Source: Macrostomum lignano
Lineage: Eukaryota
Length of the DNA stretch: 64,000 bases
Assembly (NCBI GenBank): GCA_002269645.1
Contig: NIVC01001377.1
Span: forward strand, 186,001 to 250,000
Direction of reading: 5' to 3'
Both the position numbers and the translations under genes were made by a program. This document shows positions 373-37,365 of this stretch, piece by piece. Position 1 is the first letter of the stretch, and every line of letters begins with the position of its first letter. Under the pieces are notes generated by a model. It saw nothing but the letters and a program-made list of their open reading frames with translations, was not told where the DNA came from and ran no database searches.

Positions 373-503
373 CACGTGATTCTGGGTAGTAACAAGCTTA
401 GCCAATCAGAAAATTCGGCGCTCATTTTAACAAAACGGCTCAGCCAATCAGAATCGACGTGCTCCATTATAACAAACTGTGGTCCAGTTGGCGGCTATTT
501 AAA
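373..503 (+). promoter_or_regulatory. Pol II promoter-like cluster (E-box, two CCAAT boxes, TATA-like)
   Basis: CACGTG 373-378, AGCCAATCAG with CCAAT at 402-406 and 444-448, TATTTAAA 496-503 in canonical order and spacing. No downstream CDS identified; it could be the U3 of an LTR. Confidence 0.4.
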
Positions 504-4226: not shown

Positions 4227-8125
<3,899 letters not shown>

Positions 8126-9777: not shown

Positions 9778-12700
9778 CTACATAACGGGTGGGCCGAAGC
9801 GCATCTGCAGATAGCTATCCTGAGCTTGAGTCTCCAGACTCGCAAGCGACTTCACAGCGGACTGCATCACGCTCACGTGACCCTGGTACAGGCCAGCGCC
9901 GCCTTTTCTCTGCTTCTGTCCGTACACAACTTTGCCATCGAATTCGTTCACTGGCACAGTCATATCCGTGTCGATTTGATCGATGGTGACGCCCAGATGC
10001 TCTTCGACATCAGCTAGCAGTTGAGGCTCGTTGTACCAAATACAGCAGCCGCCCACTTCAACTAGGTTAGTGTTGGTGCAGCCGCGACCCTTGGTCTGGC
10101 AGTTGCTATGGTACCAGACTTTCTCTTTCACGTTGGCAACAAGCGAGATGGCCAGGCCCATGCGCTCGGCGCGACCGACACGGCCGATACGGTGCACGTA
10201 GTTCTGCTTCTCGTCTGGTAGCGTCACGTTGATCACGAAGGGCAGGCCTGGGTGAAATTGGGTGAGAGATGAGATTGGGTGAGAGTGAGATTAGGTGAAG
10301 GTGAGATTGTGTGAGAGAGATTGGATGAGAGTGAGATTGGGTGAGTGAGATTGGATGAGAGTGAGATTGGGTGAGAGTGAGATTGGGTGAGAGTGAGATT
10401 AGGTGAAGGTGAGATTGTGTGAGAGAGATTGGATGAGAGTGAGATTGGATGAGAGGTGAGATTGGATGAGAGGTGAGATTGGGTGAGAGGTGAGATTGGG
10501 TGAGAGGTGAGATTGGGTGAGAGGTGAGATTGGGTGAGAGTGAGATTGGGTGAGAGGTGAGATTGGGTGAGAGGTGAGATTGGATGAGAGATGAGATTGG
10601 ATGAGAGGTGAGATTGGGTGAGAGGTGAGATTGGGTGAGAGGTGAGATTGGGTGAGAGGTGAGATTGGGTGAGAGGTGAGATTGGGTGAGAGTGAGATTG
10701 GATGAGAGGTGAGATTGGATGAGAGGTGAGATTGGATGAGAGATGAGATTGGATGAGAGGTGAGATTGGATGAGGGGTGAGACCGAATGAAGACGGAACT
10801 AAGGTGAGTGTTGAGGGGTTGATCAGGAAAACAGGAGACAGGAAACAGCCAAATAGAAAAAGTGAAGTGAGATCAGAAAAGACAGCATGAGATCATTAAT
10901 AAAAAGGGGTGGGATCAGAATAAGACAGGGTGGGATCAGAATAAGACAGGGTGAGATCAGAATAAGACAGGGTGAGATCAGAATAAGACAGGGTGAGATC
11001 AGAATAAGACAGGGTGGGATCAGAATAAGACAGGGTGAGATCAGAATAAGACAGGGTGAGATCAGAATAAGACAGGGTGAGATCAGAATAAGACAGGGTG
11101 AGATCAAAATAAGACAGGGTGGGATCAAAATAAGACAGGGTGAGATCAGAATAAGACAGGGTGAGATCAGAATAAGACAGGGTGAGATCAGAATAAGACA
11201 GGGTGAGATCAGAATAAGACAGGGTGAGATCAGAATAAGACAGGGTGAGATCAGAATAAGACAGGGGAGATCAGAATAAGACAGGGTGAGATCAGAATAA
11301 GACAGGGTGAGATCAGAATAAGACAGGGTGAGATCAAAATAAGACAGGGTGGGATCAAAATAAGACAGGGTGAGATCAGAATAAGACAGGGTGAGATCAG
11401 AATAAGACAGGGTGAGATCAGAATAAGACAGGGTGAGATCAGAATAAGACAGGGTGAGATCAAAATAAGACAGGGTGGGATCAAAATAAGACAGGGTGAG
11501 ATCAGAATAAGACAGGGTGAGATCAGAATAAGACAGGGTGAGATCAGAATAAGACAGGGGGAGATTAGACAGAGTGCTCAGCTCAGGATCCAAAAGCAGA
11601 TAAGCAAAATGACGCCAGTCACTCACCTGAGATATCAATACCTCTAGCAGCCACATCGGTGCAGATGAGAAATCTCACATCAGCATTTTTGAAGCGTTCT
11701 AAATTGTCCTTGCGCTCCTGCGGCTTGCGGTCGCTGTGCAGACAGACGCAACTGTAAGGCGCGCCTTTCCTAGCCCGAGGTCCGCCACCCTTTGTTATGA
11801 ACAGGTGCTCCAGGTTGTCGCAGTCTAACTTAGTGCGACAGAAGATCAAGCACCGATCCATGTTGTGCTTCTCAATTGCTCTAATCACGTATTCGCCTTT
11901 GAGCAGTTTGACAGCTTCGGACAGAGTCTCCGGACTGTCTGAGCTGCCAACACGATCGTTGAGATGTACACCGTCAGTTTGAATTCTGGATTTGGTATTT
12001 TTGTTCAGCAACTGCCTCCAGGACTGGTCAGCCAAGGGGTCCACTGGGCACACGCAATGATGAATGGTGTCGGCCACAGAGTCTTGGCCTTTCAAATCGA
12101 TCCATACAGGAAAGTACATGAGGCGTTCGGCCATTCGCCGCACCTCCTGGGCGTGCAGAGTGGCCGAGCAGACCACCATCTGGAGGCGGCGGCCGTCGGC
12201 CGTCACCTGCAGTTGCCGAGGGGGGGGAGGTGTTCCGATAGTTGTCTCAAAAACCATCACCTCAGGGTGATGGCCGTCACCTGAAGAAGACTGGCATCTT
12301 CAAAGTAGGCTCTTAAACCGCAATTGGATGATACTGAGGATCGTCTCTAAAGTATAATGAGAATCGCATCTGTAAGACACCCGTTGAAAATGAACTCTGT
12401 AGGCTAGTTAGAGCGCAATTAGAGTGCATATTATAAATTATACTGTGACTGTTTATATTGCGTCCTAAAACGCCATGTTCTGCAGCTACTATTCAGTGAC
12501 TGCTGTTTGCCCGATGCTTGAAAGCGTGTTTAAATTTTTTTGACTACTGTTGGCTTCCGAAATACCTCGTATATTGTCATTCTAGTTAGCAATTGTCATA
12601 GCTGTTTGTTGTGACACAACGTGGGATGCGTTTCAAAGTATTCATTAAAGACTTTAAGTTAAAGACATATTCCAAAACAAATTAAACGTAAACACAGAGG

Positions 12701-15700
12701 GAGCTATTTGCTTAAAAATATTTTCTATCTACAGTTAAAACAGGGCGATTGAGCCGCCCTTGTGTGCATTTTTTCTTTCTGTATTTCTTGTTTTATTTTA
12801 ATCACCATCAAAATATTGAGTGCAGCAAAATAAATTCGATTTTTTCACAGGGGCCTATTCTGCCCTTCTTCGTCGCCTTCGCCATCTTTCCTTGGCGTCG
12901 TTTGCTAACCATTTTATGACTGCCAGTAGTCGATGCTCTTTTAAATCTTGCTCAGTGTCATTTTTTCGTTGTTTATTTTGTCCTATGAAGGCTTCGTTGC
13001 ATGTGTACTCGTAAATCCAGCTGCATATTACTGTGTCAGCATCAATTTAACTAGTACAGTGACTGAAGTTTATCAGCCCGATTGCTACTGTTACTTTGTA
13101 CAACAGCTTTTTTGCTGTTTTTATGTTCTTTCATGTGACCTGATGAAGAAAGAGCCACCTGAGGTCCATTTGGAAGGTTTAAGAGAAGATCATGGAGAGC
13201 AACAGCAGCTCCCACAGCTTTAAATGAAAGCTCAGGCAGCTGTTCGGTTCACCTACGCCGGATTCGAGTGGAGTTTCGTGACTAAATGCTGCCATCTGAC
13301 ACGATTCAAATTAAACCAACTTAGTTGCAATGAGAAAACCACTTTGCCGCTCAACTTTAGTTAATCGAGAAGTTTTGACATGACACAACGTTAATCATTA
13401 CCAAACGTGGCGTCGTCTGGTCTGGCATCCAGAACCACGGAACATTCCAAGGCTGGACGCCTACATATGACACTATCTACCATGACAACAAGATCAGTTA
13501 CATTGTAAGAACCGCCAAAGACAAAGCCACAGGAATATTTCTTAGTTCTGTGCATAATTGACGATTAACTTCTGGCAATACCGCTGCTGCGGCCCAAGGC
13601 TGGAGCCCAAGTGGTAGCGATGCATTATATGACCATGCTGTCAAGACCTATACCCGCCTTAGGCTAAGCTGTAGAAGTGTCCATAATATATATATAAATA
13701 ATATATACAGGTGGATCAACTTTATCTATCTTAACCGGTGATTTACCGGAGGTAGTGAGGTAGTCACTATGTGCACATGCTTCCTGGAAACCGGAGCAGT
13801 GGAGAAAACTGGCACCCTCAACTGAAGTGCCGATCCAAGTAGTATATGGTGAGAAGCTGGAGGATGCTGTTGTTCTCCATGTCACAGCACACGAATGTGA
13901 CACAACAGACACTGTAAACATGTTGCGTACTGTCATACGAGAGAAGCGGCTTAGCCAAAGTGATCTACTTGCACATGTGCTGCCGAATTGAGTAAGGAAG
14001 ACTGGTCGGCAATCGCTGCTTCCACTAAGCATAATTTGGATGAAGCGACAAAAGATGAAAGGGTAAGTAAATTTCGTTCTTTGACTCATTTGACATATTT
14101 TATTGGAGCACCATTTACAATCGTGATCTTGTACATGTAAATGATGCATCTATCTCTCTATATCCTACAACTCACAGCATCTCACATAAGCCTGTCTCAA
14201 AGTGCCAACCGGAATCCAGCCGCAACACCAGCTTGAAGATGGGTGCGCTACTCGTACTCTGGCCAGCTTTAGCAGCCAACTGGGCTCTGCGAATATAGTG
14301 CTTCAATGGTGACAGCGCGTGAGTGCCAGCAGTGGTAGTAGCTATCTTGAATGCATACGCTCGTATTTAGACCCACGTTTTAAGCTTTTGTGCTAATAAA
14401 AAGCTTTAGCAATATATTTAGAAGTCTTCTCGAGGAATTAAAATTAAATTAAATTTTGGATAATTTAATTTAATTAAAGATTTAATTAATTAATTAAAGC
14501 CAGAGTACGATTTTTAAAGAAAATTAATGATTAGGCCGTTTTTAGATCGAAATTATTTTTCTTATTTCTCAGGGTGCACTTTCTGCCGTACCTTACTTAG
14601 TTGGGGGCATATGCCAAGAGGCAGGTTGAATTCAGCGAATACGTTGGGTATCAATCGAAGGTACACGTAAAATACGAGTACAGTAATGATTTTTGTTCAT
14701 CAGTAAAGTAAGCCGAATAGACACGTTTTCAGGCTTTTTTAAATCTAAGATTCATATCCTGGTGGGCTGCTAAAGCTAGTTAAAGCAGCAAGAGAAGTGG
14801 GAAACTGACTTATATCTGTATTAAATTATTGTATTATCTGTGTTTGCTTCACTAGGCATTTACTGGATGCAACTGCTCCATCTAAGAGTGATTGAAGCTG
14901 AGATGCGCTGCAGTGTGGAGTCGCCAGTCTGGCCGGAGTTTACCCTGCAGTTTCGATGTCGATTCATGTGAATCTTTCTGTTTGAACGGATGCAGAGCTC
15001 GAGAAATTCCAGGACTGTATTTCCACAAATAAAATGATGATATAACTATAAACAAGGCTGTTGTGAGTTGTTAGGGAGATCTTATACATGTAGTCCCTTC
15101 AACTGTTTATAAAGGGTGAAAAACGAAACAGTTGGGAGAGGGCTTATGTTCTAATGTTACCGGTGTGTTATTTAGATTTGTTGACTGCAAGAAAGTGGAG
15201 CATGCAATAGTAATGTTAATGTGTTTCCCTTTGAACATTACTACTGCATAATAGCTCTGAACATTTTGTTTCCCTTTCTGTTGCTATACTACAGGTTAAG
15301 GCCAGGAACAACTCCGCTCTTATGTGCGCTGTGGAAACACACATAGAGCAAAATACCGTGCTCATCAATGTATGTGCTCAGGGCGCTGCTCCATGTGGTA
15401 TTCGCCGAAGACGACCTGCTCACGGAAGTCGTTGACGATGCATCGGTTTCTCCCGAGGTGAGGGCTACATTGAGAAGTCAAGAAGTCAAGATATGGAATG
15501 GCTCTGCAATTGAGAAAGCCCTTCTCTTGGCTAGAGGCAATGTGATGCCCTGAGCTGTGGATCCCTCCACGGGCCAGGGTCTGCCTACTGGCCAGGTTCT
15601 GCTGCTCCAATCGACTACGGCGGGTCCAAGAAGTTTTTATGAACCATCCCGACGTGACACTCGAGGACGGGCCGCTCAAGAAGTTGATTTTGAAGCATTT

Positions 15701-18700
15701 CAGGCACCTTAAGGCAGAGAGACGAAGTCTGATTCGGCAACCGATATTAATCACTATCTTCATCATCAAGACCTTCGTGCCATCTGTCCATGCCCAGTCC
15801 AAGAAAGGTGCAAAAGCTATTGAAATCTTACAAACGTTCTCTTCAAAACAAGTACCACAAAACTCTATCATGCGCTCAATGCACAGGAAAATTAAGGGAA
15901 AAGTGAGAACCCCAAAAAAGGCGATATCGAGATTCACAAAAATGCATTTTGAATGAACCAGCTGCGCATGAATTCTTGACCTGGAATATTTTGATTAGCA
16001 GCATTTTTCTCTAAAGCAATCAGTGGACAAGAAAATTTTCGACATTTTACTTAAGTGTGAAATTTGCACCCACCTTGCACTTTATAGTCCTAAAGCCTAT
16101 GAATATGTTGTTATATATCGCTTGCGTTCGCTATCCCTCTGGATGTGCTGGCTGCCGCAACACAATCCTTGCGGGGCCACAGCGCAGTGTGCAATGAAGA
16201 CGAGGTCGGCGACGATGCCCCAGCCGACCCAGTCGTCTGGAATGGTACGGTGCACAGCACCAAGGCCCGGGCCCGGTACCACGTCGGTGCCGCGTACCTG
16301 ACTGGCGAGCCGCAGGAGCCGCTTGATCTTGAGTGCACGAATAACTGCCTCGGTCATCTGGCCACCTTTTTCGAAATTCTGCGGCCGACCCATTCGCTCG
16401 GCTCTTCGCCGATAGTCAGGTCCGGCGCTACCTGGCTCTGCAATCAGTTTGCAGACTACAGTGATGATTGGCGGCACCTACTGATCAGCTACAGGACGTC
16501 AATGGCCCGGACCGGCACTGCGATCCAGCAGTGGCTAGACAGCGCCGACAACATCAGGCCTGTGCCATACGGAGAGTACGCAGCATTTGCCGAGGCTGCC
16601 GGAGCTCAGCCAATGGACCGTGCGGAGTATAACACCATGGTCGATAATGTCCTGGCCACTGGCGCCGCCGCGCAGGGCCAAGGGCTAGCGCAGGCCATAG
16701 GAGGCGCCGCCCCACAGGTGGACCTGGCTGCGTTGGGCCCACTCCTCGCACAGGTACAGGCGCAGCTCGCTGCGCAAGGCGGAGCCGCCGCGGCTGCCCG
16801 CCCGGCTGCCCAGGCGGCTGCCCAGCCAGCTGCCCAGCCTGCCGCACAGCCAGCAGCCCCAGCCGCAGCACCGCAGCCGCCACCCGGCCCAGGCGGCGCA
16901 GCCGGAGGAGTAGGCCGAGGCCGAGGAGGAGGCCCGCCTGTCCCTGCGCCAGGCCACCAGGCGACCGGTGGTCTGCCGACCATGGCGGAAAACTAGAGCC
17001 GCTCAGGCCTCTACCACAGGCGGTGGCGCGCCCGCTGAGCCCGCCGCCTGCGCCTGAGCGAGATACTTCAGCTAGCACTATCCCGAAAGCCCCGGTTGTC
17101 GAGCGGCCAGACGTCTCGGGGCAGCCAACCAGGCCTTCTTTAACTTCAAAAGCGGATTTCAAACGCTAAATGCATTCCTGGATTTTGTGATCAAGCTTTA
17201 CAAGAACTATATCAGCGACGCAGCTAAGACGATGGCACAGCCTTTTACTACTGCAATGTGGTAGCCGATGCATATCAGCTGATGCATTTCCCGAACTTGA
17301 CTTGTATTCCGCGGCTGCCAGCATTGGCATTGAATCCCACGAGCTGCATTTGATTCGCAGCATGGCGCTGCTTTACATGCGGATTCGAATGTGTGGCGAA
17401 AGACCTTCCATGCACAAGAAGCAAATTAGGGACGAGGCAAAAGCTCCTAAGGACAGAAATATTTTTCTACCTGAAGTTCAGCCTATTTCAGTGGATGCCT
17501 AGTAAGTTTAACTCATACTATAACTGTACAAGCAAGCTTTAAAATGATTGATTGGAAATAATCTCTCGAAAAAAGATTTCAAGAGCTTTAAATACCGGAT
17601 TTTTCACGGAGGGATCGTACCGTCCGCGGAGGGGGTTGGCTGGGCAGTCTAGTCTTACTTCTTTCTCTGTGGAGTCAATCTCCTCTGAACGCTCCCCCAA
17701 GCTATGTGTGCACTATCTGTACGTGTATCTTCCATGTCACTGCACGCCTGGCTAGCTGGGGCCCAGACAGGGAATACTCTACATATGAAGTAATACTTCC
17801 CGATTCAGGCCTGTCTGGGCAGACTATCCCAGGCCAATGTTTCTTGCAAAGAAAACTAGCATGACTTGCCCAACGTCCTTTTTTCGAAAGATCAGAAGAG
17901 CCGGGGCAGAGAGGACGGTGAGAATAAAATGATTTTGAAGAGGAAAACAATGAATTAAGGACGCTTAATGTACATTATGTACACAATAGTGCGTACTCTG
18001 GCTCTAGAGTTGAACAATGCAAGTACATGTGCATTTTCCCTTGTCCCTTTGTTGCAGCTCATTTATATATCTTCAACAAAGTTTAGAGTAACGAAAAAAT
18101 AAAATTTTCAAATGCTGTGTTATTGACTGTAATTTCCAGCTATGCAAATGCGACACCAAGAGATAAGAAAATAAGCTTCTATTCTTTTCCAAAGGACCCT
18201 TCTTTGCTGCAGCGATGGCTACATGCCATTCCGAACAGAAATCTAAGTGCATCAGATTCTGTGCATCAAAAATTTTACGGAATCTGATTTTGTGACTCTG
18301 TCATCGGATGGGAAGCGAAAACTTGCCGCTTTGAATTCGAAAATGCAGCTGATTCGACTCAAAGCTAAAGCTGTTCCAGCTGTTCAAAGCTAAAGCTGTG
18401 TCCAGGCTCAAACCAGTGCACTGACGAATTCCTTGGAAACGATGAATTGCATGATTTTGAGGATGCTCTAATGAAGGTTGAAAGTTCTATGCTTTTATCA
18501 GGATTTGTGAGAAGCACGGACGATGAATCTATTTTATTCTACCGAATCAAGAGGTCCGTCTCACAATTCAATTCAGCTCATCAGCTTCTTGCCTCAGTCA
18601 TTGTGCTTAGGGATCTCACCTTTCAGGCGTCTATGTTTGGACTTGCTTCCCCAGCTCAAAGTTCTGACCAGTTCAGTCATCTGTTTCCAAATCAAAAGGA

Positions 18701-21700
18701 TTTATCGCATTTGCGACAGCTGTGAACTTTGGAAAACATGTTGGCATTGCTAAGTCTTTTGTTGATAAACTAACGATTCGGCCGCTTTATCTTTATTTGT
18801 CAAACAAGTTTTTAGTTGCTATCTTGAATCCATTGCCGAAGATTCTGACCGTAAATTTGTGAAGTTTATCGCCCAACAATACTCTCTCGTTCATAATGAT
18901 CATTTCTGATGAACCATGCTCATCCTTGCGCAGAAATGAGCAAGGCTTTCTGAACGTAATGTTCTACGTCGCAGGCTACCTGACCAAATCAGTCAACAAA
19001 GGGTGCCAGCAATGTAAGCAGTTTTTAATTAGCAAAGAAAAACCGCTTTTACTGGAGGTCACAACTGATTTCCTTTCTATTCATCAATTTCTTGTGCGCC
19101 AATTGACTAGAGGTGAATTGTGCAGCCCTTCAGATTCTGCCTTTATTTTGTACATGACAGTTTAACGCCTTCGGGAATATTTGCAGTTTAAAAGAACTGC
19201 TTCAGAAGTTATTGAGCAGCAAACTACATCAGATTTTGTATCATTCTTAATAGTTAAGATGCAAACAATGTGGATTGTGACGCAAATCTTAGTTTAAGCG
19301 ATGACAGCTTATCTGCAGCGTTTGATTCGCAGTACAATCGTCGCTGGCGCAGTCAACTGAACTGGCAGGTTCCACGGCAGAAAAGCACCCAAGGATTGCC
19401 TTCAAGAACCCGATGGTGCACAAAAGAGCTATGCTGGCTGCACTTCAGTCAGCTGAGTCAAATGAAGTTGCGGCCAGAAGACAATCGCCTTCTGGCTGAC
19501 TTGGTCGCTGCTAAGGAACGGCAAGTTATCCACGCCGTTTATCTTGCCGAGTTGGTGTGTCACGATGGCACGACCGTCGATTTGGAATCTATTAATAGAC
19601 ACGATCCAATTCATTGGCTAGAAAGTTTGTCACGGCAAGGATGCGCTGAAAGTTCACTTGCTCTCGGTAAAGCGAAACTTCTCGTGGTCATCAGTTGAAG
19701 CTAGTGTAAATCAATTCCTAAGGGACATGCGCACGAGCAAGGATAAGGACAAGTACTACCTCGTAGAGTACCGCCAACTTCTATGCCTTTTTGGAGTGCA
19801 AATTATCATCTGACCTATATTTATTACAGCTTACGTCAATTAGGCTAAATGTCTGATTCAACAGCGTGCAATCAACCGCCTCCCAAGAGTAGAGAGAGAC
19901 CTTTTATCTTTTCTTTGTGTAGTAAAAGTCACTTTACCAATAGTTTCTTACAAATATTTTCAATATTTTTTACGTTAATTAACGCTCTAGTTCTATAGTC
20001 TGTGAGCTTTTACCACAGAAAATGTTTGGTATCTTTAAACATCGTAATTTGAAGTCCACGCACCACACTTTGCTACGCAATTTTTCATTTTTTACTTCGC
20101 TGTACTTTTAGTAACAATGTTGACGTGTTTTATTGTCACTGGTAATACAAAGTCTTTTATAATATAATAAAAATATATAAATTCCTTCAGTAAGTTTTAT
20201 GACAAATTAAATATATGGCATAATAAAGTATTACTATTAGTAGCGGCTTTAATAAATTCACAAGATACCTCAGTTTCCGTGTTAAAATATATCTAGATAT
20301 TAAAAAATACCTAGGATTTACCTAAATAAAATTTATCGTTTACACGAACATGACAAGTGCAGACTAGTTACTCAAATAGGGTGACAGCACAAAGTAAAAA
20401 AGCTTACATACCCTCAACATTCTACTTAACTTATGGTAGGGTGAAAAAATATTTTTGAAATATTACGACAGCCGCCAAGTAGAGTCTGGGCGCCGACTTG
20501 GCGTAATCCATACCGGTATTTAAGTCTCTCACAATGAGAATAATTTGGTTGAAACCTTCAACCCAGTATGTTGAATTGCTCGGCTGAAGCACAAGTGCAT
20601 TATAATTCCGCAGGGTGGTTGCAGTGAGCTTGTAATTATCCTCTTATGCAACTTACTGTTTATATTCCGCTACAGTTAATTCAAAATGTATCTATATTTT
20701 ATGGTGCTTAATTAGTTAAATGATTATATTGTTAAATGCTAATGAAGTGCTAATGAAAACTTGGCAAAATTCTGTCATCAAAATTTTAGTGTCCAAGAGC
20801 TATCGATTGACAGCATGTTTTTGTGTAAGCCATCGTTATTTGTCCGCCTCTGGACGAATAACAAGTACCTTTTGTGCACCAGCTATAGTTATATTGATTC
20901 CTTCCTAATTACTCGCGATTTCGGCCTCTTTACGTAGGTATTCATAGTTTTTTTGGCCTATATGCTCTCGTAACTCCCATGTATTTTGGTATTTCACTGT
21001 GTGGCCATTTTATTGTGGAATTATACGAGCGTACATAAATCCCATTAATGAAACTTGTTTGGCAATTGAGAAGACTAATGCTTCTTTGCCAACAGATTAG
21101 TTGTGTCCACTGTGCCAAAATCCAGTGTCTTATCTTTCGAGACACCTTCGATTTTGGCACGAATTATCAGCTTCTGATGCGATTGATGTACTAAAGGAAG
21201 AGAAAAAGAACACTGTGCTGCAAAAAGTCGAACAATCTTGGGCAGCAAGCACAGCTAAGAAAATTAAGCCTGAGGCACCAGCATCTAATGAAACTGTTAC
21301 TAATTTGCCAACGCTCGACGATTTCGAGGAGCATCTTAAAAGTTACGAAGGAACACAAAAAGCTGCTAGTACATCTGTGCAGCGTCGTCGAAGTTTAGCT
21401 GCTATTATGCGGCACATCGGCACGGACGACCTATTCGATGTTATAAAGGAAGACAATCGTCGCGCTGTTTCATCCTTCTTAACTGAGAAGAGCACGGCGC
21501 CTTGGCACTTACGAGTACTTACGGTCCCGATTTAAAAAGCTCATTGAACGTAGCGAGATGACTTCAGAGCTAGATTCGTTTGAGGCGACTTGTGCGTGCT
21601 ACGGAAAGTCTCGTTTACAGGATGAGAAACGCGCCGAAACTTTGCGCAGAATAAAACTGGACGAGGAAATACTCTCCGTTGAAGAAATTCGTGCCATTCT

Positions 21701-24700
21701 TGATTGCATACAAGCGTTGAAGCCTCCGGCTGAAGTCAATAATCAATCTGAGGAAACAATTCCCTATCTAAGACTCAATTTTATGTGTTCTCGTAGCACT
21801 TTAACTGGGCCGACGTTGTTTCAAACGCCGTAGTGAAAGAATTCACTTGTTGGAAGGAGGAAGAGTGCCGTAAGGAAGGAGCGCTATTCAAAGTTTTTAA
21901 GCATAAAACCGGAGAGTTAGGACCGGTTTTTATCTCTGTCGAAGAAGTTAAGGATTTGCTTATTGCATATGGTGAGCATCGACTTAAATCTGGCGCCAAA
22001 CCTAATGATCATCTTTTTTTATTCGGCGCAAGAGACCACTCATTCTCGACACTTCTGCGACAAAAGAGATCAAAGTATCCAGCATTCGAAACTATTAAGC
22101 GCTTGAACGCAAACAGCTTTCGCTATTTTTGGAGACTAAAAACCGTGAATTAAATGGAAACGACCCCGAGAAGCAACATCTTGTGAACTATTCGATGAAC
22201 CACACAAGGGCTGTTGCCGTTAAGTCTTACATGGCGAACACAACTACTTATGCCCGAGCCGCGAAGTCTGCGCTGGAATCAACATTCGATACCGCTCTAG
22301 CGGATGGCCAAGGCAGTGTTGATGCACCGACGTCAAGTTGCACACCAGCCATGAACTCGTGGCCTGCCTGTCGTAAGAAGGTCAATCACGATGCTTCGGA
22401 CGATGGAAAGAAAAAGAAAGCAGTCCAAAGCAAACCTGAAAAATAGGTTGTGCACAAACGGCACTCATCTTCGTCCCAACCTCCATCGATCGATTCGTCA
22501 GAACCTGCAGAGAAAAAGCAATCTGCTGAGGTTAATTTTAACAGCAGCCGTCTACAACACGAACATAGCTCGTATGTGTAGAACACTAGAGTGCGGAGAC
22601 ATAATCAACGCTAAGTTTTCTACATATCCTTTTTGGCCTGCTATGGTCTGCAATGACCCGGTTTCAGGAATTCGGATTCGTCGACAGGAAATTCACGTAC
22701 AATTCTTCGAAAGACCTCCTACTAGAATGTGGATTAAGTTCGGCAACATCAAGCAGTTTGATCATCAAACACGACCAATTCTTTCGTTTTTCTTTTTTTC
22801 CTTTATTGTGCTTTTGCTACATAATATTTAGCCCCATCATTGCCCTCTTTCTGTTTTTGCTTAAGAATTGAACCAAGCCCCGGTTTTTTGCTTTGAGCTG
22901 CTGATTTCTGCTGCGTGCTGCTTTTTCTGAAATAATTCCTTCAATTAAAAGGCGTAAAAGTCTCTAGGCGTAGAGCGGTTGCCTCGCTCTATCGGCTATT
23001 TGATTGAAGAGTATTTCAATTTCAAAATTGTTTCATTATCGTTATTGGTTTAATTTATTTTCAATTGTTGACTTAATTATCGTTAATCACTATTAGTCAA
23101 AAAGCTTTTTCAAACATCTATAACAGCAATTGGAAGATTGGGTAACCGAATATATAAATATTGAAAATGGCATACACAGTATGGCTACATGTGTTTATCT
23201 ATATCTGACATTATTAAGGCGCACAGGCTGATGTCACGATGGTTAGGTTTAGGGTTAGGGTTAGCTGCGTCACGCTTAATTTTTGTCTCTTTCTCGTGGG
23301 ACACACTGCGTCATTCTTGCGTCATTATTTCAAGATTTCCGCCACGTCAGATTTTTTTTCTGTTCGTCATTGACGGTCACCAATAGTACGCGTACATCAT
23401 TATCTGAAGCATAGATTTTATATTTGTTTCTGTTTTTTCCACTAATCTTTCCTGTGTCTATTTATTTCATAATCCATGCAAACAAACAATAACTGCAGCT
23501 AACTGTAGTCGGCAGCAACGACCTTAATGCTGTAACGCATCCAGAATGTCTCAGAAGTGATAAAGCACCAACGATTTGCAATGCCTCAAAAGTGCTTCGT
23601 GTGAAACTTTTCAGTGACTGAATTTATAACTAAACTAAATAAAGAGTCGTTATAGAGTCGCCCCACGGCCACGAGAGTCAACCCAGAGCCTCGAAGTGAC
23701 TTTTGGGCGATTCTTAGACAACTGTGTGACGATTTGAACCATGACTTCTCATCGTCGTTGTCGTTTAGAGTCACTTTTTTTCTTCTTTTACCTGTATAAT
23801 CTGCAACGGTTCTGGGGCGATGCAAGTAACTCTGGGACGCTTTTTCTTCTTGGATTGAGTACCGTTTTTATCGGGAAATTGGGAATTGCCTCTGAAGGAT
23901 ACTGAGAATCGCTTTTAGACCACTTTGGCCTTAAACAACACGAAGGATCCCCTTCTACCCCTAACCGATAGCAGCACTCCCTCACAATGCCCCAAAGCCG
24001 CTCACCTTAGGAATGGCCCTATGGATGCCATCAATCAGGCTTCCATACCCAGCCGATAGCAGGCCGTCGCACTCGTCCAGCACAAACAGTCGGCAGGCCT
24101 GCAGAGACAGCGCGCCCTGATCGATGAGGTCCTTCAGCCTGCCTGGCGTGGCCACAACAATGTCCACACCGCGCCGCAGGGAGTCCAGCTGCTCCTTGAC
24201 AGCCTGCCCGCCAATGATAAGCAGCTCAGTAGGGCTAGGATTAGTCAGGTAGCGTTTGAACTTGCGCAGCTGATCCAGGGTCTGCTCGGCCAGCTCCCGG
24301 GACGGCTCGATGATGATAGCCAAGGGCGCGTTCTTTGGCGGAGAGGCCGAGCTGGACTGGCTGCCAGAGCTGGAGGACTGAAAAAATGTAGATCATTAAA
24401 ATTTTACTTGTTTCTAGATTTAAAAAAATGTTTAAAAACGATCTGAAAGACGCGGTTTGTGTCTGTTGCACAATGTGTTGATATGTGTTGTTAGTTAGAC
24501 ACATTAAAAACATGTTAGTCAAATTTTTACAAACATATTGGGCAGACCCCTTTTAAACCTTCAAGAGACACCGCGCCCATAAACACGTTTGACAAACATA
24601 TCCTACAAAAACTTTGAAGACAGTCACCTGAGCCTGTTAGAAAGCTCTTTAGAACATATTTACAGACACATAAACCTTTTAGACAGACACCTAACCTGTT

Positions 24701-27700
24701 AAGACAGACACCTAAACCAGATAGACAGACACTAAATCAATTAGACAGACACTAAACCTGTTAGACAGACACCTAAATCTGTTAGACAGACACCTAAACC
24801 TGTTAGACAGACACCTAAATCTGTTAGACAGACACCTAAATATGTTAGACAGACACCTAAATATGTTAGACAGACACCTAAATCTGTTAGACAGACACCT
24901 AAATCTGTTAGACAGACACCTAAATCTGTTAGACAGACACCTAAGCCTGTTAGACAGACACCTAAATCTGTTATGTTAGACAGACATCTAAATCTGTTAG
25001 ACAGATCTAAACATTTTAGACAGACACCTAAATCTGTTAGACAGATCTAAACATTTTAGACAGACACCTAAATCTGTTAGACAGACACGTAAACCTGCTA
25101 TTAACACCCTATAGAACCTGTTAGAAATGCAGAAAGGCTAACAAATGCAATAGTCTCACTGGTCCCAATGCTACGCAGTCCTTAGCAGCCTGGCAGACGG
25201 CCACAAAAGGCTTGGACGGCGGATGCTTGAACTCGCTAAGGCCAAAGTTGACCCGCAGCTCAGCATTCTTCAGGCACACGCAGGGAAAGAACGCAGCGCT
25301 CCGATGCCCGGCATCAATGTCGAACGCTTTGCCAAACAGTTTGCCATTCTTGGAAAATGCAATTTCGCCCTTGTCCAAATCGATGAAGCAGCCAATTGTG
25401 TCGCTAAGAATGAACGATTCGCCGTACGTGTCGAACTGTTTATGGTGCGACTTTTTTCCCGTGCCGCCGTAGCCGTAGCCCTCGCCGTCCGTGCCAAGAT
25501 CAAGTTTGGCTGCCGCTGTGGCCCAGCCAATCCTAGCCAAGCCTTCGTCCGTGACCGTGGCCTCGAAGTAGTACTTGCCGCGGGTCTTCACCCCGGTTAC
25601 GGCTCTGGTGCCGTGCCAGTCCTGTGGGACATTGTTTAGCATAGCAACTGAGTTAATCCTGTATAGTTACATGACTCAAAACTTTAAATAGACAAGCTAA
25701 AATGCGCATAGCAACTAAGTTGTTGACTATGGATACGTCATTTTAATAATACATTAATACATCCAAAACAACTAGCCAAAATCCACATGGTTCCTAAACA
25801 AAAAATGACTAGCCAAAACCTACATAGCAACCAACTTGTTTACTACGGATACGTGATGCTAATCATCGGTTCCCAAAAAAATATACTAGCAAAAATATGC
25901 ATGGCAACCAAGTTGTTTACCATGGATACGTGATGCTAACTATCGGTTCCTAAACAAAAAATGACTAGCAAAAATCAGCATAGCAACGAAGTTGTTTATC
26001 ATGAATACGTGATGCTAATTATCGGTTCGTAAACAAAAAATGACCAGCAAAAATCTGCATAGCAACCAAGTTGTTTACCATGGATACGTGATGCTAATTA
26101 TTGGTTCCTAAACAAAAATGACTAGTCAAAACTTTGTATAGCAACCAAGTTGTTTACCATAGATACGTGATGCTAATCATCGGTTCCTAAATAAAAAATA
26201 ACTAATCGAAAGTCTGCATAGCAACCAAGTTGTTTACCATGGATACGTGATGCTAATCATCGGTTCCTAAACAAAAAATGACTAGCCAAAATCAGCATAG
26301 CAACGAAGTTGTTTATCATGAATACGTGATGCTAATTATCGGTTCGTAAACAAAAAATGACCAGCAAAAATCTGCATAGCAACCAAGTTGTTTACCATGG
26401 ATACGTGATGCTAATCATCGGTTCCTAAACAAAAAATGACTAGCCAAAATCAACATAGCAACCAAGTTGTTTACCATGGATACGTGATGCTAATCATCGG
26501 TTCCTAAACAAAAAATGACTAGCCAAAAGCTTGTATAGCAACCAAGTTGTTTACCATGGATACGTGATGCTAATCATCGGTTCTTAAACAAAAAATGACT
26601 AGCCAAAATCTACATAACAACTAGTTGTTTACCATTGATACGTGATGCTAATTATCGGTTGCTAAACAAAACAGACTAGTCAAAACTTTGCATAGCAACC
26701 AGGTTGTTTATCATGAATCCGTGATGCCAATCCTCGTTTCCTAAACAAAAGATGACTAGCTAAATGCATAGCAACTAATTATTTACCTTGGATACGATTA
26801 TGCGACTTAACAATGCGTTTTTATGATATCTAAAACTGACAAGCTACATACGTACATAATAATCAAGCTTTGTTCGCAGATAGGCAAGCCATTGTTCAAC
26901 TCATTCACTAACCCGTTGGTGCCGACTCTGCACCAGCAGTCCCTCTGCATCGATAGCCAATTGTTCAGTACGATCGTGCATGTTAAATCGCCAGTGCTTC
27001 TTCTGGGCAGCGGCTGTATTAGAATTGGCGGCTTCAGAGGCTGATGCAGACTTGCCGGATGATTTGCCTGCAATGAAGGTTTGTAAGTTTGGTCAATTCA
27101 AAGTCATTATGTCAGAAGAGTGCGTAGGTAAGAGTAGAGAGTGCGTAGGCCAGAATATATAGGGAAGAGTGGGTAGGGGGATTAGGGTAGAGTGGGCAGG
27201 GTATAGTAGAGGAGAGTGGGTAGGGTAGAAGTAGAGTAGGTAAGGTAGAGTATGGTGGTGGGTAGGGTAGAAGGGGAGAGTGGATAGGGGACAGTAGGGG
27301 AGGGTTGGTAGGGGAGAGGGAGTATTTAGGGGAGGGTTGGGGAGCATGTAGGGGAAAGTAGGTAGGGGAGAGTGGGTAGGGGAGTGGGTAGGGGAGAGTG
27401 GGTAGGGGAGAGTGGGTAGGGGAGAGTGGGTAGGGGAGGGTGGCTAGAGGAGAGTAGAAGAGTGGGTAGAGTAGAGAAGTAGAGGAAGTGGGTAGAGGAG
27501 TGCGCAGGGAAGTGGTTAAGAGACTAGGTAAGTGGATTAGCTAAGAGTAAGCAAAGGCAGCTCAATCCCACCTTCACTAGCATCTTTAAGTGTCTCATAG
27601 ACAATCTGCAGCACAGGCAGGCAGAAGGCGCCAGTCTTGCCACTGCCAGTTTCAGCAGCCATAAGGACATCGCCGCCGCCAAGAATCAGGGGCACAGCCT

Positions 27701-27797
27701 CGCCTTGAATATCGGTGGGAAGAATCCAGTCCATCTCTGATACAGCTTTGGATAGTTCGGGCATAACACCCATTTCTGTTTCGAATGCTGTTGCCAT
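9778..27797 (-). CDS. DDX1: ATP-dependent DEAD-box RNA helicase DDX1 (SPRY insertion), 6 exons, about 754 aa
   Basis: Exons 27797-27572, 27067-26913, 25621-25160, 24377-24006, 12206-11627, 10247-9778. All junctions are GT-AG and total 2265 nt, in frame. Motifs [12 protein letters not shown] ([17 protein letters not shown]), [42 protein letters not shown]. Confidence 0.97.
10250..10785. repeat. 16-17-bp minisatellite at the 3' end of DDX1 intron 5
   Basis: Unit GAGATTGGGTGAGAGGT, about 32 copies, grading directly into the acceptor at 10248-10249. Confidence 0.95.
10905..11570. repeat. 21-bp minisatellite in DDX1 intron 5
   Basis: Unit GAGATCAGAATAAGACAGGGT, about 31 copies. Confidence 0.96.
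15368..15750 (+). pseudogene. Decayed BEN-like domain ORF
   Basis: Across a stop and a frameshift it reads [15 protein letters not shown]...[40 protein letters not shown], a helical pattern resembling BEN domains. Recognised by eye only. Confidence 0.35.
16118..16996 (+). CDS. GC-rich orphan ORF with Ala/Gly/Pro-rich C-terminus; 5'-truncated, possibly viral capsid or gag-like
   Basis: 283-aa open frame (16145-16996, no ATG start) in a sharply GC-rich island within AT-rich intron. It has a globular-looking N-half and a [15 protein letters not shown] tail. Confidence 0.45.
   Translation, partial: SLAFAIPLDVLAAATQSLRGHSAVCNEDEVGDDAPADPVVWNGTVHSTKARARYHVGAAYLTGEPQEPLDLECTNNCLGHLATFFEILRPTHSLGSSPIVRSGATWLCNQFADYSDDWRHLLISYRTSMARTGTAIQQWLDSADNIRPVPYGEYAAFAEAAGAQPMDRAEYNTMVDNVLATGAAAQGQGLAQAIGGAAPQVDLAALGPLLAQVQAQLAAQGGAAAAARPAAQAAAQPAAQPAAQPAAPAAAPQPPPGPGGAAGGVGRGRGGGPPVPAPGHQATGGLPTMAEN
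16987..17060 (+). promoter_or_regulatory. Candidate -1 programmed ribosomal frameshift cassette
   Basis: G_GAA_AAC heptamer 16987-16993 directly before the TAG, a 6-nt spacer, a perfect 9-bp stem (17000-17008/17052-17060) and an inner 10-bp stem (17017-17026/17041-17050). The -1 frame stays open for about 58 codons. Confidence 0.4.
17170..17500 (+). mobile_element. P-element/THAP9-like transposase C-terminal fragment
   Basis: [37 protein letters not shown]...RNIFLPEVQ matches the H-x3-LI-x-x-x-x-x-Y-x-x-IR C-terminal pattern of P-like transposases. Confidence 0.45.
17540..17950 (-). pseudogene. PWWP-like domain relic
   Basis: [42 protein letters not shown], then in a shifted frame a helical KNPVFKALE segment. 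Resembles NSD-type PWWP (WP-x-x-V-C-x-D-P...V-x-F...R-x-W). Confidence 0.35.
18110..19250 (+). mobile_element. Internally deleted, decayed P-element (THAP domain plus transposase C-terminus)
   Basis: Frameshifted THAP: KCCVIDC...[24 protein letters not shown]...[10 protein letters not shown]...RLKAKAVP (18110-18385). C-terminal FYVAGYL...CQQC...RGELCSPS (18896-19165). The catalytic core is not seen. Confidence 0.75.
19301..19500 (+). pseudogene. Decayed DUF4806/BEN-like ORF
   Basis: [29 protein letters not shown] / [18 protein letters not shown]. Reading TGA as a mutated TGG restores an NWTG..G.K..AF motif typical of this family. Confidence 0.35.
21101..22831 (+). pseudogene. C2H2 zinc finger - tyrosine recombinase (phage-integrase fold) - PWWP gene, disrupted by about 4 frameshifts and one stop
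   Basis: [19 protein letters not shown]; SAM-like [10 protein letters not shown]...[15 protein letters not shown]; [10 protein letters not shown]; KVFKHKT (21899-21910) GELGP; NANSFR (R 22121); [13 protein letters not shown] (H 22201, Y 22228); [26 protein letters not shown]...[13 protein letters not shown] (22586-22765). Confidence 0.75.
23241..23264 (+). repeat. Short interstitial telomere-like repeat
   Basis: GGTTAG GTTTAG GGTTAG GGTTAG. Confidence 0.6.
24660..25110. repeat. 21-bp minisatellite in DDX1 intron 3
   Basis: Unit AGACAGACACCTAAATCTGTT, about 21 copies, degenerate at the edges. Confidence 0.93.
25690..26800. repeat. 79-80-bp tandem repeat filling DDX1 intron 2
   Basis: Unit about CATAGCAACCAAGTTGTTTACCATGGATACGTGATGCTAATCATCGGTTCCTAAACAAAAAATGACTAGCCAAAATC; measured periods 79 and 80; about 14 copies. 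Confidence 0.93.
27130..27540 (+). repeat. G-rich degenerate 15-bp repeat in DDX1 intron 1 (G-quadruplex potential)
   Basis: GGGTAGGGGGAGAGT-type units with many GGG runs on the plus strand. Confidence 0.85.
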
Positions 27798-27830
27798 GGT
27801 TACTGAAGTGTGCAGATAAACTAAATTAAA
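27798..27830 (-). promoter_or_regulatory. 3' splice acceptor 5 nt before the DDX1 ATG (5'-UTR intron or trans-splice site)
   Basis: Sense strand ...TTTATCTGCACACTTCAG|TAACC ATG; AG at 27804-27803. Confidence 0.55.
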
Positions 27831-28315
27831 TTTAAAAAACTCAAACTTTTTTGAAGTATCAACTGATAGCAAACTATAGGGAAAGTGGTTTATACAGAGA
27901 AGGTACTTCCAAGCAGAATGTATTGCTAACCAAAATCTTTATGCCAATATATTTCATTTATAAAATCCTTAGCAGAAAGGTCATGTTTTTAACACAAGGA
28001 AGATGAGTGCAAAACAAATTATTTGATATACTCTTGGCAACAATAATGAAGTTGTTTCCCCTTGCAGTGGGATGTAATTATTTTACAACCTCAATTGCAA
28101 GCTAGTGGTGTAGCTTGCACCCTCATTGCAAACGATGGCTACTTTCAAAATTGCTAAGTATATAAAATTAAATATATAAAACAGCAAATATAACTGTCTT
28201 AATAAGGAAAATACCTTGTCATTTAATAAGTACAACATTTGTATTCTTTTGGGTAGGCATTTTTGCAACTTACCACTAGTCTATCACAATTTATAGTGGC
28301 TGGGTCAGCCAGGTT

Positions 28316-28456: not shown

Positions 28457-29854
28457 GAGATAACTATTATCTTTGCTATCTATGTCTATCTATCTTGTTG
28501 GTTTGTCTATAGTAACAGAGTTACGCTACTGATTATCATTATTCATAACACTGGGGGAATAGATGAGGTGCATAGGCAAAGTGGATAACATAGTATATAC
28601 TAAAAAAATTCTAGCATATATTGGCTTTGTATGCCAAAAGTTAGATACATACAGTTGGTGCACAATTCTCAAGAGAAAATAGTGTATATACACACTTAAT
28701 ACACACTTAATAGAATCACACAGAAGAGTTTTAGTTAAGTAGCAGAAAGATCAAAAAGTTTATTTTTTCAAGTATAAATTACAAGCTTTCCTGTTTTTAA
28801 GTTTGTAACAAAACAAATGTTTAAATATCAATTTACTATAAATAGCCTAGTAGGCCCCTATGGGCAAAAAATAATTATTAACAAATTATAAGCCAAAGCA
28901 AAAAGGGTCTTTTATGCAAGGCAAACAGCTGTTTATTGCCAAAACACAAAAATGTCATTTATTGTTGCAACAGCAGACCTAGATTTGAGAGTATCACTAT
29001 ACTATGCATGTATACTAATTTTTTTGGCATACATTTCTAATTATTCAATTTTTGTTTGGGTATATACCCAGAATGATCTGGCTATAGCACAAGAAAAAAT
29101 AGGGACATCTGGCATAATTTAAACCTTGGAAGCTTAGTTGCAAAAGGGTTCTATAGTCTAAATCATACTAGGTGCACCATGTATGCCTAAACAAAAATCG
29201 AATATGTACAAATGCATGCCAAAAATTAATAGAAGCAAATTCTTAAAACTATGCTGATATTGCAATAATAAATGACTTTTTTATTTTGTGACAATAAATG
29301 ATTTTTTTAATTGTGTAATGGACCTGTTTGGCAATACTATTCAAGAAAATTGATAGGCCTAATTGCAACAATTTATTTAAATGCCTTATTACAAGATTTA
29401 AAACCTAGAAAGCCAGAAATTTATGTTCAAAAAATATTTTTCTCATCTTTTTCTATTTTACAATAATTTACAATATCAATAGATAGGAGTGCTATATCCC
29501 AACTATGCACATCTATTTTTGGTTTGCGTGCAAGGCCAATGCACATCTAAATTTTCAGATATATGCTATTGACTAAAATAAAAATAAGAGCTCTGTTCAG
29601 TTTATTTTTTACAAATGGTATAGTGACAGGTGACTATAGAAATAATGGGTATAAGTCTATGTTTGGGTAAACAATAGCAAGCAATGAAGCAATAAAACAT
29701 AGTCATAGGCTAGGCCTATTTGATACAAAAACTAACATTTTTCTAGAAATAGGCATATTAGCATTATGTAATAATATATACTTTTCTGAAGATTTTTCTG
29801 AATAAGAAACAATTTGTTTCATATATTCACCATTTTTATTGCAACTTGATTGAA

Positions 29855-30068
29855 CATATTGCACCCCCCAAAAACCAAAATTTGCACCCCTTAAACTTGA
29901 TTTTTTGCCCCCTAAACGCATTTTTTGCACCCCTTAAACTTGATTTTTTTGCCCCCTAAATGCATTTTTTGCATCCCCTAGCTTAAAAACTGGCATCTCT
30001 TACACTCATGTTGGCACCCCAAACTTGGACTGCCCCCCCCCAAAATGAAACTCCAGATCTACCACTGT
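29855..30068 (-). mobile_element. Probable end of a non-autonomous DNA transposon
   Basis: Repeated TTGCACCCC(T)TAAA subterminal motifs ending in CTCCAGATCTACCACTG (reverse: CAGTGGTAGATCTGGAG...GGGGGGGGCA). The partner end was not found. Confidence 0.35.
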
Positions 30069-31232
30069 ATATTAACTTTTGTTTTTATTATTTATTTTTC
30101 ATGATATTAGGCCTACAAATAGCTATCTAGTCAGCAATATTATAAGCCTTGAAAGTACTTTTTGGTAGGCCCTATAACTTTTCAAGGATATGCATTTATG
30201 CAATTCCATAGTTTTTCCATGCCATAGTCCAGAATGTGGCCATTGTGCCAGTAAATTCAGGTATATTTTTCCCCCTTACTGACAATCTTAGCAATGTTAG
30301 CATATAGAATTTTCACAAGTCTAAGATTGTAATTAGTGTACACATAACACAGCTTTTGCGCGACCCGTTTGAAGCTTTTAAAGGGCAGTATTTGGGTTGA
30401 CCCCCAAAAAGGCGACGCCCACGTGCGTCTAAAAGTGTAGGCGCAAGTATAACTTTTTATGCGCCATCGAATATATATCTTTTTCAGTCTGATTTTTGTA
30501 GAAAAAATTTAGGTGAACTGGTGAACCCAGGTAGGGGTAAATACATTAGTTAGTCTCGATTTGTCTGTAGTTGCGTTCGCGCGCTGCTTGTGCTAATTAT
30601 AATCAGTGCTTGTCGAATTGGTGTAAATTCAAATGCACAAAAATAGTATAAATCATTTTTAGTATATAGGATATTAAAAGTATTAAATTTTATTGTTTCT
30701 TTGTTTTTGCTTTTATAGTTAGCAAATTGTCTTTCTTACTTTAAAATCGACGACAAAAAGTCAATAGGCACAAAGATTTGTTAAAATTTACGCGTAAATT
30801 ACCAGACCTGCTTGAATTTAAATTTAGAGTCTGTATAAAGCTAGACGATAAATATTTTTTCATGAATGATTGATCTAGTATAGCTAAGGTAGCTACATAT
30901 TTAAATACTTATTTAATATAAAAAGTATAAAACTAAAATGAATAAGCAGTGAATTGGGCAGATAATTATAGCCAGCTGTTTTTTAATGATGTATCAAGAT
31001 CAATTATTCATGAAAAAATATTTATAAAATCCGTCGTAGCAACATGTTTTATAAGTTATATCAAAAGAAGAGCTTTGTATCTGCTTCCAATAAAAAGCTA
31101 TCACCATTTTAAAGTGAAAAAGTGAAAATTTCCTATCTCGCCATAGTGCATTTTTTTCGTGAAAATCAGCCTTTAATAAATTTTCCAAGAAACGAAGTGT
31201 CCCGTCCTTCTTCTTCTAGTGGTCCTTGGTAT

Positions 31233-36302: not shown

Positions 36303-36368
36303 GCAGCCGAAATGAGGAAGATAACTTGCCGCTTTATAGTTAGAAACCTGCAGTTTTCTATACCCACC

Positions 36369-37365
36369 ATGCTATTCATCAAGCTTGCTTTTGTCACCTG
36401 TGTGACTGTCTTTTTTCTGGTGGCTTCTTCTGGCCAAGAGATTCCATTCATTTACATTGGTTGCTATAAAGATGACCACGATAGAGACCTGAAAGGACCC
36501 TTTAAGGATATGGTTCAAACAGCTACTCATGAGCGTTGTAGCATCTTCTGTGAAGAAAGAAATTTTCTGTTTTTCGGTTTACAAAATGGTAGACAGTGCT
36601 TTTGCGGTAATGCTTATGGATTGTATGGGCCTGTAGCGGAGAGCGGCTGCTCTTTCGACTGTCGTGGAAACTCAACCCAGAAATGCGGTGGGAGTTTTAA
36701 AAACTCGGTCTTCTCCCTTGTCTATCAAGGTAAGGCTTTGTATGCTATAGTAGATTATTTTTGTCGGTTTACTGTTATATTATACACGGAAACTGAAGCC
36801 TATGTATCAACTGGCAGTCATGTGACAACTTGTCGGACAAGTCAACTAGAAGCACCCTAGAAACAACTAGAAAAAGCAATTCAAATGCCTCACTTATAGG
36901 TTTCCATGGGTTTAGGACTCCGATTGCAGTCAGTTTGGTCTGTAGCTTTTCCTTGAGCTTCATTCTAGTCTTAAGTTAAGATGAAATCTCCACTTTTTCC
37001 ACCAAGAGCGCAGGGTAGGGACCTGGAAGGGATATCTCAAAGTTTCTAGTCAATTTCGTGACTTCGTCTATACCATTCTGATGCTTAAGTTGACATTCCC
37101 TTCACCTTCTGTAATGATTTCTACTTCAGCTGGAGACGGTTTCACTGTGACGAAACGGACCAGTCAAGTGATGCCGGAAGGACGGAGTAAGTTTTGGACC
37201 AAAGCCGCCAGATCCTACACAGAGTGCCTGATCTTCTGCCAGTCCAAAGTCAACTGCAAGGCTGCGTTTTTTGCCAATCAGCAGCTGCTGTGCTACCTGC
37301 TGAAGGCGGCCCAACTGCCTGGCAGTCTGAATGGAACCGCTGGAGACTATTTTGTCCGCAACTGA
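36369..37365 (+). CDS. Secreted WSC + PAN/apple protein, copy 1 (2 exons, about 198 aa)
   Basis: Exons 36369-36729 and 37130-37365 (phase-1 GT-AG intron). Signal peptide; WSC YIGCYKD...CSIFC...GLQNGRQCFCG...CRGNSTQKCGG; PAN ECLIFCQSKVNCKAAFF...LCYLL. Confidence 0.88.

Follow-up and report, generated by a model that had tools for sequence, protein, structure and literature searches.

Cryptons, including CryptonA, are low-copy transposons whose sole enzyme is a tyrosine recombinase and that have neither a reverse transcriptase nor long terminal repeats (PMC3212892). The DIRS, Ngaro, PAT and VIPER retrotransposons are likewise eukaryotic mobile elements that integrate via a tyrosine recombinase, and they encode a reverse transcriptase and RNase H. 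Chromatin reading is built into the chromovirus (Ty3/gypsy) integrases, in which a DDE integrase carries a C-terminal Royal/chromo-like reader of histone H3 lysine 9 methylation (H3K9me). In human immunodeficiency virus type 1 (HIV-1), reading of trimethylated histone H3 lysine 36 (H3K36me3) by the PWWP domain of LEDGF/p75 directs integration into transcribed gene bodies. A survey of chromatin-reader capture by transposons stresses chromo and PHD domains, not PWWP (10.1101/2021.11.30.470311), and our literature search found no paper describing a tyrosine recombinase-PWWP element, in line with an earlier note on this locus, made from the sequence alone, whose author knew of no such family. Here we analyze a candidate for such an element in a 64,000-nucleotide stretch of the Macrostomum lignano genome (contig NIVC01001377.1, positions 186,001 to 250,000; hereafter, the window). 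We propose, with a probability of about 0.5, that window positions 21092-22775, lying antisense in an intron of the helicase gene DDX1, are the remnant of a dead Crypton-like transposon, and that the PWWP domain at its 3′ end most likely belonged to the same element, having been acquired in its lineage only.

We searched for homologs of the recombinase with phmmer, scanning 1.84 billion representative proteins exhaustively. The best was a hypothetical protein of M. lignano (P0001; 1090 residues; E 4.6e-65, 36% identity over query residues 1-417), followed by eight weaker clusters (P0002-6, P0008, P0010 and P0025) from M. lignano and from ENA and Logan assemblies. In the family alignment (A1) the motifs GNAxRPDV, HKT, (T/N)xxYR and H-x8-Y are invariant or nearly so behind a conserved finger, and the catalytic R, K, R, H and Y are conserved, with T, N or R in place of the second histidine (His II, in HxxR). 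The corresponding landmarks of the window copy (HKT, 21902-21910; NSFR with Arg II, 22112-22123; H-x8-Y, 22201-22230, its His at 22201-22203 and the Tyr nucleophile at 22228-22230) align with the family motifs HKT, (T/N)xxR and H-x8-Y. The finger pattern C-x2-C-x11-12-H-x4-H is kept in all homologs, and Pfam zf-C2H2 gives no score to the window finger. The family is present at low copy number wherever it is seen (1-3 members per 90% cluster), some members have introns (loci L002, L003 and L005), and P0001 and P0010 carry long basic C-terminal extensions, so the family C-terminus tolerates additions.

An AlphaFold model of homolog P0004 (residues 170-520, built with A1) had a predicted local distance difference test score (pLDDT) of 84.3. 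In a Foldseek search of the PDB with this model, 10 of the 11 best matches were tyrosine recombinases, with XerA (probability 1.0), Cre (template modelling score, TM, 0.44-0.47), Tn1549 integrase and Brujita integrase among the matches and vaccinia topoisomerase IB further down the list. In the model, the loop that follows the first catalytic-domain helix holds the first catalytic Arg, HKT lies at a beta-hairpin turn and the second Arg within a helix, and His and Tyr flank the last short helix. At the level of the predicted structure, a two-domain tyrosine recombinase fold, with a helical core-binding and a catalytic domain, is confirmed for the family, and the window copy, as a homolog at 36% identity, is assigned to the same fold. 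The finger, SAM-like core-binding region and catalytic landmarks that the earlier note had picked out are correct on this structural and comparative evidence, which is not profile-based. The homologs form a previously unannotated eukaryotic tyrosine-recombinase family that is invisible to current profile libraries.

Several M. lignano copies have moved. P0001 and P0092, members of one 90% cluster, lie on different contigs among different neighbour genes. Their loci, L004 and L007, share one block of ~9.4 kb (L004 7203-16586) that is 99% identical and at whose ends similarity stops sharply; L006 and L008 (P0010 and P0093) share a block of ~8.4 kb, also with sharp ends. Both blocks stand between unrelated flanks and neighbour genes. 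The L008 copy lies antisense inside the span of a UQ_con gene, and one of the four M. lignano insertions seen is intronic. Element 1 starts CCCCTATAGGCACGTTTATGAC and finishes GTCATAAACGTGCCCC, with a 4-bp direct repeat CCCC and, subterminally, an inverted repeat of ~14 nt; both ends of element 2 read CC. The window itself contributes to this picture: positions 1-346 and 351-1732 are 93% and 89% identical to the sequences on either side of the L004 insertion (left, 6855-7205; right, 16590-17994; contig NIVC01000359.1), and the L004 junction, once the element and one CCCC are removed, aligns gap-free to window 277-425, where the target reads ...TACGACCCTGTGGGAAC...; the window therefore holds an empty site for element 1, which reads CCC(T).

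No reverse-transcriptase open reading frame (ORF) occurs in the shared element blocks, no other sense-strand ORF of at least 120 aa occurs within the L004 element, and the annotation of the L006 locus calls no gene besides the recombinase; the elements measure 8-9 kb with only a 3.3 kb ORF. The recombinase family is mobile, at least in M. lignano, has no reverse transcriptase and is Crypton-like. The earlier proposal of a eukaryotic tyrosine-recombinase transposon is borne out by the fold and by the mobility of the relatives. Movement of such a DNA transposon would be driven by the recombinase, a protein in which a C2H2-like finger at the N-terminus is followed by a helical core-binding domain, the catalytic domain (R, K, R, H, Tyr) and a basic tail. 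If it behaved as Cryptons do, the element would be excised as a circle that recombines with a short identical target sequence, presumably the 4-bp CCCC in the case of the M. lignano relative.

These elements also contain repeats of their own. At L006 8448-11602, seven tandem units of 451 bp, which include sequence annotated as coding, lie upstream of the recombinase ORF, and at L004 13274-16002 arrays of 80-bp and 190-bp units lie downstream. On the minus strand of the window, 240 nt at 29845-30083 share 72.5% identity with a segment inside the M. lignano element but outside its ORF (L004/L007 9401-9617). Nothing similar to recombinase coding sequence adjoins this window segment, which may be a small repeat common to both or a trace of another element copy.

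The recognisable protein sequence at 21092-22775 is carried by five collinear reading-frame pieces on the plus strand (Table 1). Family homology starts abruptly at 21092, just where a TAG (21098-21100) stands immediately 5′ of the finger, and extends to about 22330 in the frame-1 piece; upstream of the finger no homology was found in the window, and the N-terminal 60-460 residues of the homologs, including CHHC-like fingers, are missing. The recombinase is broken by three frameshifts (near 21495, 21790 and 22130), by a deletion of ~12 residues relative to P0001 at the first of them, at the start of the frame-0 piece, and by one premature in-frame TAG (21794-21796). The region of the first catalytic arginine, described in the earlier note as scrambled, can be read in frame 2 and is mutated rather than garbled: S*HFNWADVV in the window aligns with GNFHRADAV in P0001, with Trp (TGG, 21806-21808) in place of Arg I. 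The ordered catalytic set Arg I, Lys, Arg II, His/Trp and Tyr is incomplete, and the relic is truncated at its 3′ end. Judged from these lesions the copy is dead, as had been supposed: with Arg I replaced by Trp and the ORF broken, it is inactive. Beyond the Tyr, frame 1 stays open past the TAG at 22444-22446 until 22581; this TAG may be where the recombinase ORF naturally ended. The 146-codon PWWP ORF overlaps the end of the frame-1 ORF by 56 nt.

Table 1. Coding pieces and domains of the relic, and the intron in which it lies (window coordinates).
Feature	Position	Strand	Basis or content
C2H2-like zinc finger, CPLC-x12-H-x4-H	21104..21160	+	first residues with family homology
Frame-2 piece: finger and first half of helical core-binding (SAM-like) domain	21101..21499	+	tblastn with P0001 residues 459-595, 36% identity; family alignment
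Frame-0 piece: second half of core-binding domain; frameshift at each end	21492..~21790	+	tblastn and alignment
Frame-2 piece: catalytic domain part 1 (TAG, Arg I to Trp, HKT, NSFR)	~21791..22141	+	tblastn, alignment, structure positions
Frame-1 piece: catalytic domain part 2, then basic tail to TAG 22444-22446	22126..22446	+	alignment
Frame-2 ORF, 146 codons, intact, with ATG	22391..22831	+	basic N-terminus, predicted long helix (residues 30-65), then PWWP beta-barrel
MSH6-type PWWP beta-barrel, Y/W/F cage	22595..22768	+	Pfam, PDB phmmer, AlphaFold model
DDX1 intron holding the relic	12261..23981	-	flanking exons 11619-12260 and 23982-24323

The PWWP assignment is supported by profile, sequence and structure. 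Pfam PF00855 scores 42.2 bits against a gathering cutoff of 25.6 (E 1.2e-10), and a phmmer search of the PDB returns MSH6 first (2gfu, 7e-10), then NSD3 and NSD2. In the databases it is closest to the N-termini of invertebrate MSH6 proteins (45-53% identity), which have a PCNA-interacting peptide (PIP) box upstream and MutS domains downstream. In an AlphaFold model of the 146-residue ORF, five strands are predicted with pLDDT >90, and the NSD2, NSD3 and MSH6 PWWP domains superpose on it with root-mean-square deviations of 1.1-1.7 Å. The aromatic cage columns are filled by Y (22625), W (of PFWP) and F (of QFF), which we take to correspond to human MSH6 Y103, W106 and F133. The caged PWWP that the earlier note described is thus present as a barrel and not as a whole domain; no remainder of the domain, PIP box or MutS sequence was found in the window. 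Right after the truncated PWWP, at 22780-22960, the plus strand is T-rich, and the minus strand reads AATAAA and then an A-rich run; this segment may be the 3′ end of a minus-strand retroposed insertion that removed the remaining PWWP.

A recent copy of the host MSH6 was considered as the source of this domain and rejected, since identity to any database PWWP is at most ~53-55%. Two finger-plus-PWWP proteins, P0081 and P0023, were rejected as relatives of the element, having no BLASTP similarity to it, and P0081 adjoins adh_short genes. Ten further PWWP matches contained no transposon domain.

The tight collinear adjacency of the two parts makes a shared origin of recombinase and PWWP the most likely reading. 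The PWWP barrel starts about 260 bp past the end of the recombinase homology, on the same strand and collinear with it, and lesion density is similar across both parts. Frames 1 and 2 are both open over 22355-22581, where one indel (the A-run at 22405-22425 is a possible site) would suffice to connect them, with no stop codon having to be reverted. We therefore picture the MSH6-type PWWP as gained in one lineage only and most likely as part of the same element, either as a C-terminal domain, the frames being joined by that single indel, or as a short ORF downstream that overlapped the recombinase ORF. We hold it to be somewhat probable that recombinase and PWWP were parts of one element. That it served as a functional domain of the recombinase is doubtful, and it is a similarly tentative suggestion that one lineage of a new finger-bearing, Crypton-like macrostomid family gained an MSH6-type PWWP as the C-terminal domain of its recombinase.

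A number of results weigh against a recombinase-PWWP transposon, and some of them touch the recombinase assignment itself. Pfam matched neither the separate frame pieces of the recombinase nor a stitched 409-residue recombinase protein at E ≤ 10, and found no family in six full homologs at E ≤ 1, with both Phage_integrase (PF00589) and DUF3504 (PF12012) unmatched; the A1 profile recovered no recombinase from PDB sequences. The earlier note had named failure of the motifs in profile searches as a ground for abandoning its proposal, and in Pfam and the PDB they did fail; the failure is softened by the fold search, which recovers tyrosine recombinases. The termini of the window element are undefined, the best flanking inverted repeat (21046-21076 against 23010-23038), which we rejected as a terminal repeat, being equalled or beaten by 30 of 500 shuffles. 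No further copy of the window element turned up in the collections searched: viral contigs yielded no further locus, the one metagenome contig that matched, of 2.5 kb, has no room downstream of the match, and exact-product look-ups of the window ORFs were empty. There is also no second copy in the 64-kb window.

Other points in this group concern the link to the PWWP. In all nine homolog clusters a second match, to the PWWP, is absent; eight PWWP queries run by tblastn found no such domain in homolog loci L001-L006 with up to 10 kb of flanking DNA, and L007 and L008 carry 99%-identical copies of the L004 and L006 elements already checked. The domain is incomplete, covering profile positions 1-63 of 93 as compared with ~1-90 in ten intact relatives, so that the C-terminal helical part is missing, and the nearly invariant beta1 Trp (of VWAK) is Asn. 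The TAG at 22444 stands 72 residues past the Tyr, near where P0002-P0004 end (40-60 residues past the Tyr), and the PWWP ORF is separately intact, as it would be in a non-fused arrangement; two overlapping ORFs or a juxtaposition therefore fit as well as a fusion. The fusion reconstructed in the earlier note has gained no independent evidence, all detectable homologs being without a PWWP. Homologs that end before the PWWP had there been taken as telling against it; such homologs are what we found, and the weight of this is lessened by their distance (the closest at 36% identity). With only one dead copy to go by, the fusion cannot be shown.

The likeliest of the alternatives, unlikely in our judgement, is a secondary juxtaposition, in which a recombinase relic and a PWWP fragment of separate origin (an isolated pseudo-exon, or part of some other repeat or gene) came to lie together when either landed beside the other. 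In its favour, every homolog lacks a PWWP, the PWWP of the window has an intact ORF of its own in a different frame, and the PWWP similarity spans about 58 residues, roughly one MSH6 exon, with an end point shared by many database matches that are single-exon ORFs. The minus-strand AATAAA and A-rich tract abutting the truncated PWWP end suggest further insertions here. Against such an accident, however, PWWP-coding relics are rare, and there is little chance of finding one on the same strand as an unrelated recombinase relic, collinear with it and within ~260 bp, midway along an intron of 11.7 kb; there is no MSH6 PIP box or MutS sequence nearby, and identity to any database MSH6 is at most ~53%, hence the fragment is no recent host copy.

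It is also improbable, to our mind, that the PWWP was passive cargo, a host MSH6-type gene fragment captured by the transposon, as Pack-MULEs and other elements capture such fragments, and never a working part of the recombinase. The M. lignano relatives, with 8-9 kb around a 3.3 kb ORF, indicate that the family carries much extra DNA, and the PWWP is incomplete, a barrel only, with the beta1 Trp lost; but the cage keeps its three residues, the barrel is still modelled with confidence, and the 146-codon ORF is open and one indel away from the recombinase frame, an openness that is not significant given the lesion density (no-lesion probability ~0.24, our own estimate). That the locus is a host pseudogene, a domesticated finger-recombinase gene possibly with a PWWP and analogous to the Crypton-derived DUF3504 genes, is very improbable despite the low copy number, the introns in members at L002, L003 and L005 and an AG dinucleotide exactly where homology starts (21099-21100), since the relatives have moved, as their identical blocks at unrelated loci and the empty site show, and since the family, in contrast to DUF3504 genes (PMC3212892), has kept all its catalytic residues.

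In the reading we prefer, a transposon that had most likely acquired its PWWP would have inserted antisense in the DDX1 intron and decayed afterwards. The placement in a DDX1 intron given in the earlier note holds: on the minus strand, exons of DDX1 occupy 9778-12260 and 23982-27872 (SPRY, DEAD and Helicase_C), the exon at 11619-12260 carrying Helicase_C and the SPRY exon at 25121-25642 matching DDX1 proteins at 55-64% identity at best. If functional, the PWWP might have tethered the recombinase to the H3K36-methylated chromatin of transcribed genes. Actual targeting of gene bodies, argued by analogy, appears less likely than a functional PWWP, and a single antisense intronic insertion says nothing on targeting.

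The intron and the rest of the window hold further repeats and genes. Upstream of the relic, at 18447-19698 on the plus strand, three ORFs of 89-142 aa have no Pfam or PDB match; a YVAGYL...C-x2-C motif in one of them presumably resembles the C-terminus of P-element/THAP9-like transposases, and the segment may be what is left of a further transposon in this intron. On the other side of the recombinase relic, before the next DDX1 exon, lies a short interstitial telomere-like repeat (23240-23265; TTAGGG-type, ~three units). Repeats shared between the window and M. lignano contigs are 72-93% identical. One of ~290 nt at 52013-52304, with inverted repeats, is 82-83% identical in both orientations to L008 22577-23316 and looks like a miniature inverted-repeat transposable element. 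On the minus strand at 40968-45992 is an apparently intact non-long-terminal-repeat retrotransposon whose ORF2 of 1140 aa has endonuclease, reverse transcriptase and RNase H domains; the element is G+C-rich, has an upstream 520-aa ORF with no Pfam match and is flanked by minisatellites. Exons of MYG1 lie next to DDX1 (4227-8125, minus strand). Three WSC-domain exons are on the plus strand (36312-36860, 39375-39854 and 51517-51900), as is a G+C-rich ORF with BIR and RING domains, like an inhibitor-of-apoptosis protein (56693-57514), followed by a minisatellite.

The recombinase family is a further branch of the Crypton-like transposons, a group still poorly sampled; its 8-9 kb copies in the flatworm model M. 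lignano look recently mobile and are therefore candidates for experimental study. Were the PWWP truly a domain of the recombinase, no earlier tyrosine-recombinase element would have had an H3K36me reader of its own to steer its insertion into transcribed gene bodies, and gene-body targeting by a tyrosine recombinase would become testable. The evidence for this link comes from one decayed copy.

Compared with known systems, the family comes closest to the Cryptons, with which it shares the recombinase as sole enzyme, the lack of reverse transcriptase, the low copy number and, apparently, the absence of long terminal repeats and the presence of a short direct repeat at both ends (CCCC in the M. 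lignano relative). We compared the family with the Crypton, DIRS and prokaryotic recombinase alignments of supplement 4 of PMC3212892. Its local motif (V/Y)TN(T/H)(S/C)xR and H-x8-Y recall CryptonA, and a global hhalign alignment with CryptonA matches the catalytic R, xxR, H and Y; CryptonA was the best of seven groups at P 0.008, which is not significant, and the other groups gave P of at least 0.3, all from alignments machine-read from a PDF that may contain errors. The family differs from Cryptons in having no significant profile link to them and no DUF3504 or Phage_integrase match in Pfam, in its substituted HxxR histidine (T, N or R), in its N-terminal CHHC-like and C2H2-like fingers and, for the M. 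lignano element, in the ~14 nt subterminal inverted repeat. A C-terminal domain is reported to be lacking in animal Cryptons, whereas in the window copy the catalytic domain is followed by a basic tail and perhaps by a PWWP.

The retrotransposons with tyrosine recombinases are more distant: hhalign against the DIRS alignment gave P 0.4-0.5, and unlike them neither the relic nor the M. lignano elements are accompanied by a reverse transcriptase or RNase H, the sole reverse-transcriptase similarity in the window lying at 40968-44390; the inverted or split direct terminal repeats of DIRS-like elements are likewise absent. The PWWP has its closest sequence relative in the N-terminal PWWP of MSH6, from which it differs in the lack of a PIP box or MutS sequence nearby, in the missing helical half and in the beta1 Trp to Asn change. 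For its function, the C-terminal reader of the chromovirus integrases offers a model, although there the enzyme is a DDE integrase and the mark H3K9me, and a recombinase-PWWP fusion is here only a possibility. The PWWP of LEDGF/p75 likewise steers integration, from outside the element, as part of a separate host protein bound by the integrase. If the recombinase-PWWP link is true, a mobile element of this lineage would independently have built into itself the chromatin reading that HIV borrows through LEDGF.

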